Origin: Bugula neritina
Taxonomy: Eukaryota > Animalia > Bryozoa
Length of the DNA: 64,000 nt
Direction: 5' to 3'
NCBI GenBank assembly: GCA_964035545.1
Contig: OZ037772.1
Location: 6,370,889 to 6,434,888, forward strand
Shown: positions 25,040 through 63,915 of the stretch, piece by piece
Position numbering within the stretch: position 1 is the first letter of the stretch
How the letters are laid out: each line of letters opens with the position of its first letter
Notes under the pieces: generated by a model
What the model was told of the DNA's origin: nothing
Database searches by the model: none
The model's input: the letters and a program-made list of their open reading frames with translations, nothing else
Made by a program: the position numbers and the translations under genes

Positions 25040-28000
25040 TTAGTTGTTAGCTGGCTGTTCAACAATTTCTAACCCATGAATTTCCAACTCATAGATATTA
25101 AGAAGCTCATTTACTTCAACAGCTGTTACTCTCACATATCTACCATACATTCTAGTACAACATGTAACCAGAAATATATCTGCAGGTGGTTGTCCAGGAA
25201 GGTAGTTACAGATCTCATCTTCTGGTGGATTATCAAAGTTGGTGTCAGTTTCACCAACTGCTACTCTCACATTAGCTAGTCGATCATTGTAATCTATAAA
25301 TTTGAAAACTAGTTTTGAATTAACTTGAATTTAACGTTGAGAATATAAAAATATTATGAGTATATTATTGCAAACATATATGTATATTACCATTAAATAC
25401 AAATAAATCACCACTAATCTGTTCAGACACTATTGAAATAGATAAAATATCAATATTATACAAAATATGCACAAACAATTCACTGACCTTGAAAACTGTG
25501 CTCAGATCTGTCCCATATTTTGACACCTTCAACAAAGTGACTAGTGGTTAAGTCTACTTGCAGCCACGGAGACAATTCTTGATTAGTAGCAAATAAACTT
25601 CCTTGCTCTCCTAAGCCAGCTTCCGAGGGAAGATAAATTCCATCAATAGCCTTCAACCCTGACAAGTTTGCTCCATATATGCTGCTTGATGTAGCAACTT
25701 TATCTAAAAGTTACCAGAATAACATGAATTATACAAGACTTATACAATATAAAGAGTGAATACTCTTTAAAGCTTATATGACATCATGTAAAGTATTGTG
25801 GTATAATGTCACATACATGTGATTAACCTAGTTTACTGACTTTGTAGCATTATTTTTAGTCTTGATATATGTTCAAAAAGCTTATAACTCAAAATAGCAT
25901 TAGCAATTGGCTATCTTTACCTTTAGCAAGATTGGTAGAGAAACCATAGACAGTCAACTCTTCAGAGTGTTTCTTTTTAACAGAACACAGTCTACTAGTC
26001 TGCTCTGTGTTGATGATCACTTCTGGTTTATCAGACAGGAAACAGGTTGATGTATTCTTGTCATATGACACAGCAACACATGACTGGTTACAGGAGCAGA
26101 GAGACAGACAGAACTCATGACTAGAAGTTATTCTCTGTTGGTAATGTGTTAGCACATCAGAAAAGCTCTGGGCTAGAAAAATATTCTCACCTAAAACCAT
26201 TAAAAGCTGCCAATATTGACTAAAACTAAAGCAGCTTCTTTACATTCTACATTGATGCCCACAATTTCTTCACTTTTAAGTAGTTCAAGTCCCAATAGAT
26301 TTCATTTACTGCACAAATTGTGATTTAAAGTTACTATAATTATAAGCATCATCTTTTGAAAGAAAAGGGTTGCGTCAATTTGGGATTTAAGGAACAAGAA
26401 TATTATTACTTGTCACTGAAGATATCTTCATGAAGTAAACCATCTCTTTTAAGTTTTCTGCTTTCAGCTGTACTAAAAGTTCATTGAATAGTCTACAAGT
26501 TCTGTTTGCTGATTCAAAGATACCAGACAGACACTGACTGTGAAGATCAGTGCACTGAGTCATACAGTCTAGACTAGATCGAGCTAAAACATCAATAAAA
26601 TTGTAAGATTGTATTGTGTGTATGCATGTGCATCTGTCTGTGTTGTATCAGTATGCACTGAACATTGATCTGGAAAGGTTAATTGACCTTTGGACTCTTT
26701 CAAAAATAAAACTGACCACAACATCTATTGTTTGCTTGCATAGTACAGCAACAGAGTCAACAAGTCCCTTAGCCCTCAACTCTATAGTCAGTATATGTTG
26801 TAAGAAGTAACAGTTCACATTTTCCAGCATAACCTAATGTTTTTCTCATATTATAAAAAAGAGCATTAGTGTTGCCAGACCTCTGCAATGACATGTAGTG
26901 TAAACTAGCACATGTATTTATATTCCTTTTGAAATATTAACTTCTTCGGTATGTACTGTAATACAATAAACGATGTGTCAGTTTTGGATTAATGCAACTA
27001 TTTTAAATCAAATATTTACAAAATTATCAATTACTTACAATGTTTCAACTGTGAAAAGCTGTTTATCACCAAATCCAGTAAAACTGCTCTCTAGGCATGA
27101 ATTATGAATTATTTCAAAGTTATTTGAAAAGATAAATATCAATGCTTGCCTTATAATCAATAGTGTCAATGTGTCAACGTACTATAACTGCTAATAGCTG
27201 TTGAGCTGTTTTATCCTTTTAAACAAACGTGTGTTATGAAATAAACGCAGAGTTACTAAATATAGCATTGCATATGCTTACATTATATCTGCTGTGAAAT
27301 ATTATAGTAGTTTTTAACCATAAACTTTTTGCAATGGAATATTCAATAATTATTAGGCATTTTGTATGTTATTTTGTGTATAAAAAATTTAAAAAATTGA
27401 ATAAAATCATTATAGATGATATATTTAAATTGATTAGTTTTATTTTTGTCTATATATAAAGTATTAGGTACTTGGTATTTGAGGAAATGTTACTTTTATA
27501 CTATTAATTTTGTTGTATATGTTTGATTGATGGTGAATGAACTATATCTGTAAAACTTTGTTTCAGTCAAATTCTTGCTCATTTCTGAAAATTGTGCTGT
27601 ATGATTTTCATGTTTATCCGCTGCATCTATAATTAACACTCTTTTCAATAAAATAACTATTGTATAACGCAAGATATCATAATAAAAAACTCATACACAT
27701 ACACATACACACACACATATATATATATATATATATATATATATATATATATATATATATATATATATATATGCGTGGTGATATATAAACTAGTTCGGAT
27801 ATAGTATTAAAGATCGAACAAAAAACATAATCAAAATATACAGTATGGTGCAAAAAACAACACAGCAATAAAACAACACTGCAATAAAACAACTATAATA
27901 TTTATAACAATTTTACTGTTTGAATAAAATTCAGTAAGATTTTATTTAACTAATATGTATATAATGTTATCTGATACATTTTGACATTTGTAACTCACTG

Positions 28001-62313: not shown

Positions 62314-63915
62314 TCACTCGCCAACACCATGGTGTTCAACAACTTTTAACCCATGAATTTCAAGCTCATAAATATTAAAAAAGTCATCCACTTCAACAGC
62401 TGTTACTCTCACAAATCTACCATACATTCTAGTATGACATGTAACCAGAAATATATCTGCAGGTGGTTGTCCAGGAAGGTAGTCACAGATCTCATCTTCT
62501 GGTGGATCATCAAAGTTAGTATCAGTTTCACCAACTGTTACTCTCACATTGGCCAGTCTGTCATTCTGAACTATACCATCAAAAACAATAGAGTTATTTT
62601 GTTAACTAATAAGCTCAATGATTGTATTATGTATGTGTAAAATATTCCATTTTGGACCATGTTTCGGAAGGTAGTCAATTAGCATTATAATTAACTATAA
62701 TACACTAGCTACTATAACATATATAAATGCATATATAGCTCATCATTTAAAATATGTTTCACAGTAATATATTAAATTATAGAACTTATTATAGCCAAAA
62801 GCTGTTTATTGACTCACATTGGTTGGTAGCCTCAGATCTGTCCCAGATTTTGACACCCTCAACCAGATAGTTGGTAGCTAAGTCTACTTGTATCCATGGA
62901 GACAGTTCTTTTTGTGTAAATGCTAAGCTTTGATGTTCAATAATGTCAGAAGTGGATGGGAGATAAATTTCATCAATCGCCTTTTGTCCGACATAGCTTT
63001 CAGCTATTACACTACTTAAAGTAACTGTTTTATCTACAATTCATCATTCAAACAGTAATGTTCAAACTATAGTTGTTACGTAACAATTAATCTATTATAT
63101 ATAGATTGCTATCTTGTAACAAATAGATCAAGTAGCTCGTTGAAACATTTATACACCATCTCGTGCTGTACAAGCAAAATATATGCATTGTTAAATTTTA
63201 AGCCTGATAAACTGTGATGAATTTTTGAACTTTTCTTACTTCTAGCAAGATCAGTAAAAAATCCATAAACCACCAAATCTTCAGAGACCGCCTTCTTAAC
63301 AGAACACAGTCTACTAGTCTGCTCTGTGTTGATTATCACTTCTGGTTTCTCAGACAGGAAACAGGTTGATGTATTCTTGTCATATGACACAGCAACACAT
63401 GATTGGTTACAGGAGCAGAGAGACAGGCATGACTCATAACCTTCACCTTTTCTTTGATGGTAAAATGTCATGACATCAGAAAATGTTTGATTGAGGAAGA
63501 AAAGTTCCCCTAAATGGAAAACAAAACAATATTAGCAATAGGAACGGACACAGAGCTAAAGAAATTTTTAATGCACATTTATTTCTGTGGACTCAGTAGA
63601 TTCAAAATTAAATGCCTTCTAAATCGATTCTTAGATTTATTATTTATGATATAAAATCTGGTTTGAAATTTCTAGAGAATTGCTGTAAAACATAAGTTAT
63701 ATTTGCTTCAGGGATTTGAGCACAAAATGTTACATATATACTTGTCGTTGAAGATATCTTCATGAAGTAAACCATCTCCTCCAAGTTTCCTTCCTCCACC
63801 TCTACTAAAGGTTCATTAAACAGTCCACAAGTTCTGTTTGCTGATTCAAAGACACCAGACTGACACTGACCGTGGAAGAAACTACACTCATTCATACATT
63901 CAAGCATAGATCTAG
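62314..63915 (-). CDS. Gene F: PAN-PAN-F-type lectin paralog, 5'-partial (exons 2-5)
   Basis: Exons 63915-63742, 63509-63240, 63033-62818, 62570-62314. GT-AG, phase 1, open frame. Exon 1 is expected beyond position 64000. Confidence 0.88.

Follow-up and report, generated by a model that had tools for sequence, protein, structure and literature searches.

Among the closest known relatives of the genes reported here are the F-type lectins (FTLs), which share the motif His-X(24/26)-Arg-X-Asp-X4-Arg/Lys (PMC12221842, PMC5297725). In the eel agglutinin AAA, a vicinal pair of cysteines (Cys82-Cys83) stacks on the fucose ring, and FTLs also have a calcium motif, h2-D-G-x, in which x is small and hydrophilic (PMC12221842). 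The F-type lectin domain (FTLD) of MsaFBP32 is encoded by two exons, and oyster bindin is the product of a single gene with one to five tandem FTLDs, which is subject to positive selection and alternative splicing (PMC12221842). Here, we describe six paralogous genes (G1 to G6) in 64,000 nucleotides (nt) of the bryozoan Bugula neritina (contig OZ037772.1 of assembly GCA_964035545.1, positions 6,370,889 to 6,434,888 of the forward strand), a stretch referred to as the window. The genes combine two PAN modules with an FTLD, and the cluster is probably a segment of a large cheilostome multigene family of secreted PAN-PAN-FTLD glycan binders that evolves exon by exon. To our knowledge, hardly any molecular work exists on bryozoan immunity and host–microbe recognition.

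Searching the window by tblastn with the spliced G5 product returned exactly six sets of exon matches and nothing else (E values down to 7e-53), and blastn with the G5 exons led to the same six places. G5 served as the reference model and was built first by direct reading of the best copy; its exons sum to 1062 nt and encode 353 amino acids (aa), not counting the stop. Alignment and visual inspection gave the exon boundaries, from which six gene models were assembled:

25040..31025, minus strand: G1, intact gene; exons 31025-30869, 26583-26410, 26190-25921, 25703-25488, 25293-25040
39032..42606, minus strand: G2, exon 2 interrupted by one in-frame stop; exons 42606-42450, 41246-41073, 40879-40610, 40397-40185, 39285-39032
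48018..50507, minus strand: G3, intact gene with a His-type lectin site; exons 50507-50363, 49556-49383, 49196-48927, 48703-48485, 48271-48018
53052..54695, plus strand: G4, 5' fragment with exons 1 and 2 only (exons 3 to 5 absent); exons 53052-53199, 54523-54695
56117..59365, plus strand: G5, intact gene; exons 56117-56261, 57362-57535, 58191-58460, 58676-58894, 59112-59365
62314..63915, minus strand: G6, exons 2 to 5 open, exon 1 past base 64000; exons 63915-63742, 63509-63240, 63033-62818, 62570-62314

The cluster spans positions 25040-63915, with G1, G2, G3 and G6 on the minus strand and G4 and G5 on the plus strand. Exon 1 measures 157 nt in G1 and G2, 145 nt in G3 and G5, and 148 nt in G4. 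Exon 2 has 174 nt in all window copies except G4, where a 1-nt displacement of the acceptor leaves a frameshifted exon of 173 nt, and exon 3 has 270 nt in every copy that contains it. Exon 4 varies slightly (216 nt in G1 and G6, 213 nt in G2, 219 nt in G3 and G5), as does exon 5, which including the stop has 254 nt in G1, G2, G3 and G5 and 257 nt in G6. All internal boundaries read AG...GT, giving GT-AG introns, and in the open copies each of the 19 internal splice sites is canonical. The four introns are uniformly in phase 1, a symmetric 1-1 arrangement typical of shuffled extracellular modules, which would permit the exchange of exons between genes. Three copies are intact and free of stops (G1, 356 aa; G3 and G5, 353 aa each) and G6 is open as far as the window reaches; the other two are damaged, G2 by a nonsense codon and G4 by truncation and a frameshift. 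An initial annotation of the window had described six paralogs with a common exon layout in about 39 kb, four of them open and two damaged, arranged in tandem and inverted orientations and continuing past the window end. Our mapping reproduced this layout almost to the base.

Each gene would give rise to a soluble protein of about 350 aa, consisting of a leader, two PAN/apple modules with one exon each, and an FTLD spread over two exons. In G5, exon 1 corresponds to the leader, exons 2 and 3 to PAN1 and PAN2, exon 4 to the N-terminal half of the FTLD with the His and Arg of the pocket, and exon 5 to its C-terminal half. The Pfam profile PAN_1 (gathering score 21.4) matched exon 3 with 24.7 bits in G5 and 23.9 bits in G1, and was borderline on exon 2, with 21.4 (G5), 20.5 (G1) and 18.5 bits (G6). 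Both modules contain an invariant cysteine pattern, C-x3-C-x5/6-C-x11-C plus one further Cys. The cysteine counts are odd, with five in each PAN region and a single one in exon 1. The AlphaFold2 (AF2) model of the exon-3 product was poor, with a predicted local distance difference test score (pLDDT) of 53. All 50 top Foldseek matches of this low-confidence model in the PDB were PAN/apple domains, at weak E values (best 6e-3), and they included the SML-2 lectin, the HGF N domain, MIC4, factor XI and plasminogen. An ESM feature search, which retrieves language-model neighbours, led from the PAN region to PAN_1 clusters at 0.94.

The lectin part was recognised by PF22633 (F5_F8_type_C_2), the Pfam model that is matched by the fucolectins found in this analysis. 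Exon 4, which is only a half-domain, exceeded the gathering score of 27.8 by itself in G5 (32.4 bits) and G3 (28.0 bits); the half-domains of G1 (23.8 bits) and G6 (20.0 bits) fell under it. In a phmmer search, G5 exon 4 aligned to striped-bass FBP32 (3CQO; E 3.6e-9), and it also aligned to the lectin domain of lectinolysin, with the His and Asn-Arg in register. Exon 5 by itself had no Pfam match; it could be aligned to the C-terminal FTLD strands via P0036, P0010 and P0016, three relatives encoded in one open reading frame (ORF) each. A profile made of relatives and window pieces (A1) matched fish fucolectins with E values of 1e-25 to 1e-13. P0036 shares 40-44% identity with the exon 4 and exon 5 pieces of the window, and its AF2 model (pLDDT 75.8) was used as a fold proxy for the window genes. 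The top PDB matches of this model were 3CQO (FBP32) and 1K12 (eel agglutinin). The domain is a member of the F-type fold family.

The products begin with Met-Lys and a run of about 18 hydrophobic residues and end in a hydrophilic C-terminus, and five or six N-glycosylation sequons are conserved in the sequences. From the hydrophobic leader and the lack of a hydrophobic C-terminus we infer a soluble, secreted product whose leader is cleaved. The secreted product and the PAN-PAN-F-type lectin architecture that the initial annotation had proposed thus agree with our reading, with PAN_1 on exons 2 and 3 and PF22633 on exon 4, both profiles having been matched exon by exon. Structure prediction, which it had put forward as a check, bore out the F-type fold through the relative P0036, while for PAN2 it yielded a low-confidence model whose top matches, at weak E values, were PAN/apple domains.

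The residues of the putative sugar-binding site vary among the paralogs. Within the window, the position of the motif His is occupied by His in G3 and G5 only, and by Ala in G1, Ile in G2 and Phe in G6; among 11 copies from the window and from metagenome paralogs, we counted five His, two Tyr, and one each of Ala, Ile, Phe and Arg. Wherever the His is present, the His-x26-Arg spacing is exact, as in FBP32. The first Arg is retained in every copy covering that position, and the second in all except G2 (Met) and two fragments on contig L005. The motif Asp is replaced by Glu or Lys, and the loop between the two Arg has 8 residues instead of X4, four more than in the motif, with intron 4 located in it. 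No Cys lies between the two Arg in any of the 11 copies, and hence the vicinal disulfide is absent. Only G5 has a fully canonical calcium motif (A-V-D-G-N); G1, G2 and G3 read D-G-I and G6 reads D-E-I, so that x is hydrophobic in four of five copies.

These residues bear on an alternative in which lectin activity was lost in most or all copies and the domain acts as a protein-binding jelly-roll, comparable to discoidin or neuropilin b domains, in secreted ligands or inhibitors. Loss would agree with the incomplete motif of all copies, the missing His of G1, G2 and G6 and the hydrophobic x of the calcium motif; the absent Cys82-Cys83 pair makes the stacking contact with fucose in eel agglutinin, and degenerate FTLDs have a precedent in Drosophila furrowed (PMC12221842). 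However, both Arg are kept in nearly all copies, the His-x26-Arg register is exact where there is a His, and G3 and G5 exon 4 score above the Pfam gathering threshold as mere half-domains. We consider such a general loss distinctly unlikely.

Selection on the genes was analysed pairwise and exon by exon. The ratio of non-synonymous to synonymous substitution rates (dN/dS, omega; Nei-Gojobori) over exons 2-5 was 0.35-0.49 for all window pairs. We also compiled a set of eight copies, comprising the window copies and three paralogs (exons 2-5) on contigs L008, L012 and L013 (JGI 3300002729 and 3300003318), in which the exons are ordered as in the window genes. In this set, the ratio of the proportions of non-synonymous and synonymous differences (pN/pS) was 0.46 for exon 2, 0.43 for exon 3, 0.45 for exon 4 and 0.51 for exon 5. 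Moderate purifying selection acts on all exons. For exon 4, positive selection was rejected at the available power, the pN/pS of 0.45-0.47 being like that of the other exons. The term diversified recognition receptor, which had been applied to the family from the outset, is therefore not borne out in the sense of positive selection, as pN/pS is about 0.45-0.5 in each exon, including the one that encodes the binding loops.

A function in gamete recognition, analogous to that of oyster sperm bindin, would suit a sessile hermaphrodite that takes up waterborne sperm. Oyster bindin is itself a diversified FTL (PMC12221842). Yet bindin is one gene with tandem FTLDs under positive selection, whereas here each of dozens of genes has a single FTLD and omega is below 1, which makes this role highly improbable.

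In their synonymous divergence, the exons differ strongly. The proportion of synonymous differences (pS) was 0.58-0.63 in exon 4 versus 0.23 in exon 5. Between the three exon-4 types, {G1,G2}, {G3,G5} and {G6}, the synonymous rate dS reached 0.9-1.8, compared with 0.13-0.43 in exon 5. The contrast is most apparent for G3 and G6, with a dS of 1.84 in exon 4 and of 0.13 in exon 5; the true sisters G3 and G5 have an exon-5 dS of 0.15. Maximum-likelihood trees showed deep, strongly supported clades for exon 4 and a star-like topology for exon 5. The exon-4 alignment rejected the trees of exons 2, 3 and 5 (approximately unbiased (AU) test, p <= 0.002), while the exon-5 alignment rejected none of four trees. 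We also summed contig depths over four sequencing runs, which are DNA runs as their contigs cover introns and intergenic DNA. At a likeness of at least 90%, the summed depth of exon 5 was about 110 times the single-copy background, that of exon 3 about 9-17 times, exon 2 8 times, exon 4 about 3 times and exon 1 2 times. In the protein database, ORF fragments clustered at 90% identity formed 35 clusters for exon 5 versus 7 for exon 4. From the dS contrast, the tree rejections, the contig depths and the cluster counts we conclude that the genes are mosaics, in which exon 5 is kept alike over dozens of copies and exon 4 persists as old lineages. The homogeneity of exon 5 is most simply explained by gene conversion or exon exchange.

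Two further observations on exon 5 were followed. An antisense ORF of 67-95 aa is open over exon 5 in all five copies (e.g. 59126-59329, minus strand; 25076-25279, plus strand). Dual coding as the reason for the low exon-5 dS was rejected, since 23-43% of synonymous recodings keep an equally long antisense ORF; the antisense ORFs are thus open by chance and do not explain the low dS. Blastn identities had placed G5 exon 5 nearer to G1 and G2 than to its sister G3, a result that failed on equal-length codon alignments.

The same statistics bear on a structural interpretation, in which PAN and discoidin-type domains bind chitin or other polysaccharides of cuticle, skeleton or larval adhesive, and the family expanded for dosage. 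PAN (PF00024) and F5/8 type C are among the domains of the lophotrochozoan shell-matrix proteome (PMC13425148). Purifying selection in each exon with no sign of positive selection, the high homogeneity of exon 5 over very many copies, and the five or six conserved sequons would all fit matrix proteins. Nevertheless, the specific likeness is to F-type lectins and not to generic discoidin domains, the genes contain no repetitive or low-complexity region of the matrix-protein type, and the pocket His is the most variable position in a conserved context, which is unexpected for a purely structural binder. We regard a structural role as rather unlikely.

The mosaic pattern also invites a bolder reading than that of expanding secreted glycan binders. 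Exon 4 might represent ancient specificity cassettes maintained by balancing or diversifying selection, with exon 5, the scaffold, homogenised by gene conversion over about 100 genes, the whole forming an innate repertoire that discriminates between microbes. We think this unlikely. If true, it would bear on how the animal chooses between microbes, for example between the vertically transmitted bryostatin-producing symbiont and fouling bacteria.

Database searches pointed to the cheilostomes. The nearest named protein in a profile search came from the cheilostome bryozoan Watersipora subatra. Two loci of that species have a two-exon FTLD that is preceded, 4.5-10.5 kb upstream and in the same orientation, by a PAN_1 ORF (25-28 bits), and the annotated models comprise the lectin part only. 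In the window genes and at the Watersipora loci alike, an intron interrupts the FTLD within the loop that joins the two Arg; the lectin-domain relative P0036 sits in a single uninterrupted ORF (positions 414-860 of contig L001, Logan SRR25569786). An exhaustive HMMER search with exon 5 gave 40 matches, nearly all of them short fragments of exon ORFs. None was a protein of about 350 aa, so that the family appears to be unannotated in the library searched. None of the 256 matches from a pattern search of metagenome contigs for related loci was confirmed, so that host DNA seems to be missing from that collection. Two family copies lie 2.5-3 kb apart on each of the metagenome contigs L005 (502-705 and 3364-3513) and L010 (32-1318 and 3793-4269), which come from the same host or a sibling of it. 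Several of these copies are degraded; the family is thus typically arranged in dense tandem arrays with pseudogenes.

In the ESM Atlas, the best structural neighbour of the P0036 FTLD model was a mollusc cluster labelled 'fucolectin-like' (TM score 0.72). Its 211 members, with a representative of 253 aa, carry PF22633 in 91% and PAN_1 in 63% of cases. The combination of PAN and FTLD is already in databases, and the initial remark that a described family of exactly this architecture was not known, though one might exist, is weakened by this 211-member cluster. Our literature search found no paper on PAN-FTLD proteins or on bryozoan F-type lectins.

The history of the cluster can be read from its repeats. 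A self-comparison of the window by blastn revealed a direct duplication, 22.1-31.2 kb (containing G1) against 35.6-42.8 kb (containing G2), at 73-83% identity, and a head-to-head inverted duplication, 48.0-51.4 kb (G3) against 59.4-55.2 kb (G5). The arms of the latter are:

48011..51389, no strand assigned: inverted duplication, left arm (G3 and about 0.9 kb upstream), pairing with 55231-59372
55231..59372, no strand assigned: inverted duplication, right arm (G5 and upstream), from self-blastn

Positions 48011-49219 and 59372-58168 are 83% identical, and positions 50268-51389 and 56381-55231, which cover exon 1 and about 0.9 kb of 5' flank of G3 and G5, are 90% identical. Between the arms, the spacer contains the G4 fragment. 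The upstream arms thus exceed exons 3-5 of the two genes with their introns (77-83%) in likeness, which points to conservation of the promoter or to conversion at a later time. Tandem and inverted segmental duplications, the nonsense codon of G2, the truncation of G4 and retroelement insertions together bear out the birth-and-death evolution that had been suggested for the family.

One could also suppose that the array is largely dead, a relic of a formerly active family whose frames are open by chance or youth. Damage in two of the six copies, interspersed retroelements and the fact that the genes are known only from DNA would be consistent with this. However, three ORFs of about 1060 nt have stayed intact over duplicates at a dS of 0.23-0.5, with dN/dS of 0.35-0.49. 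Neutral decay would give an omega of about 1 and frequent stops, and the open copies retain canonical sequences at 19 of 19 splice sites. The chance that the array is dead seems very slim.

The surrounding DNA is that of an invertebrate nuclear genome and is AT-rich (GC content 24-36%), with many TA/TG microsatellites and retroelement ORFs, and the first 25 kb of the window contain no recognisable host gene. A retroelement insertion lies within the cluster:

44112..45803, minus strand: intact reverse-transcriptase ORF of 563 aa between G2 and G3 (RVT_1, E 7.5e-11)

This ORF is a retroelement insertion outside the lectin family. Its sequence contains a C-terminal GIY-YIG-like motif, and it is probably a Penelope-like element. 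Fragments of reverse-transcriptase ORFs of the long interspersed nuclear element (LINE) type were found at 13324-14154 (minus strand) and 33527-34481 (plus strand). G1 spans 6 kb, compared with 2.5-3.6 kb for G2, G3 and G5, because its intron 1 (about 4.3 kb) contains microsatellites and an internal 1-kb duplication. The two direct copies, 26635-27694 and 29702-30699 (77% identity), flank about 2 kb of TA-rich microsatellite. An inverted repeat pair of 350 nt (31548-31897 and 61046-60698) is 94% identical, far above the surrounding genes; one copy lies 0.5-0.9 kb upstream of G1 exon 1 and the other between G5 and G6, and each has a short ORF starting with MRKLKSQVAK. The pair may represent a mobile element of young age or else a regulatory block that is conserved. 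In intron 1 of G4, an element at about 53550-53630 reached a summed contig depth of about 137,000, against about 170 in its flanks, in all four runs. Its sequence resembles the reverse complement of the head of a short interspersed nuclear element (SINE) derived from a transfer RNA (tRNA); ARAGORN reported no tRNA in it, and Rfam and tRNA scans of the window gave no matches.

Several points weigh against a family of expressed glycan binders that evolves exon by exon. No copy has the complete canonical fucose motif (Cys-Cys, X4 and Asp deviate), and the His is absent from G1, G2 and G6. With a non-canonical motif in every copy, sugar binding itself is uncertain as judged from the sequences, and the initial view of the products as glycan-binding F-type lectins is weakened; only the His-type copies, G3 and G5, are plausible fucose binders. 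The gene models derive from DNA, so that splicing, expression and tissue are predictions, and the sole joint near G5 intron 4 in the contigs (58871 to 59132) does not fit the splice sites. The domain scores refer to single exons, and the model of the lectin fold is that of the relative P0036 in place of a window protein. Positive selection was detected in no exon, and at the available power (5-11 sequences) an arms race is not indicated. Finally, the depth figures are sums over contigs and not copy numbers, and constraint on synonymous sites, instead of conversion, could be the reason for the low exon-5 dS.

On balance, we favour the interpretation as a family of secreted PAN-PAN-FTLD glycan binders. 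The cluster would have grown by tandem duplication (G1/G2) and head-to-head inverted duplication (G3/G5), with decay at its edges, where G2 acquired a nonsense codon and G4 was reduced to a 5' fragment. Exon 4, with the loops and the His and Arg of the pocket, would persist as old and well-separated lineages, while exon 5, and to a lesser extent exons 2-3, would be kept alike by gene conversion or exon exchange. The products are probably multivalent extracellular glycan binders, similar to agglutinins or opsonins, whose specificity would vary from paralog to paralog with the type of exon 4. The PAN modules may provide a second surface for binding carbohydrates or proteins, or a surface for oligomerisation. 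As the likeliest targets we infer microbial or biofilm glycans, with possible roles in defence, symbiont handling or larval surface sensing; the initial annotation had put forward immunity, self/non-self discrimination, gamete binding and symbiont binding as candidate roles. In kind, the family is ordinary: an expanding set of lectins, not characterised so far, with the pseudogenes, the exon exchange and the growth in tandem that lectin families commonly show. It is nonetheless a clear case of exon-wise mosaic evolution, and the variable pocket His, together with an exon 4 that escapes homogenisation, offers natural specificity variants of the F-type fold.

Among known systems, the mollusc 'fucolectin-like' cluster resembles the window genes in joining PAN/apple and an F-type lectin domain in a small lophotrochozoan protein. 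Its 253-aa representative has room for one PAN module, whereas the window genes encode two in 353-356 aa; the label of the cluster is an automatic annotation, and the likeness is one of domain composition and fold only. The eel agglutinin AAA (1K12) and striped bass FBP32/MsFTL1 (3CQO) belong to the same fold and sequence family. G3 and G5 share with such canonical FTLs the His-x26-Arg register and the second Arg, and the two groups are alike in having multigene isoforms and probably in being secreted. The two-exon FTLD is common to the window genes and MsaFBP32, a likeness in exon number. In contrast to canonical FTLs, the window genes lack the Cys-Cys pair, have a loop longer by four residues and Glu or Lys instead of Asp, and mostly carry Ala, Ile, Phe, Tyr or Arg at the position of the His; they also have N-terminal PAN modules instead of tandem FTLDs. 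Nematode arrays of PAN/apple and C-type lectin genes (PMC5297725) likewise have N-terminal PAN and C-terminal lectin domains, tandem arrangement and exon exchange between neighbours, but their lectin part has the CTLD (C-type lectin domain) fold in place of the FTLD; this comparison is by description. Oyster sperm bindin is also an F-type lectin of a sessile marine lophotrochozoan, with strong intraspecific diversity. Compared with it, the window family consists of many genes with one FTLD each, encoded by exons 4-5 and held under purifying selection.

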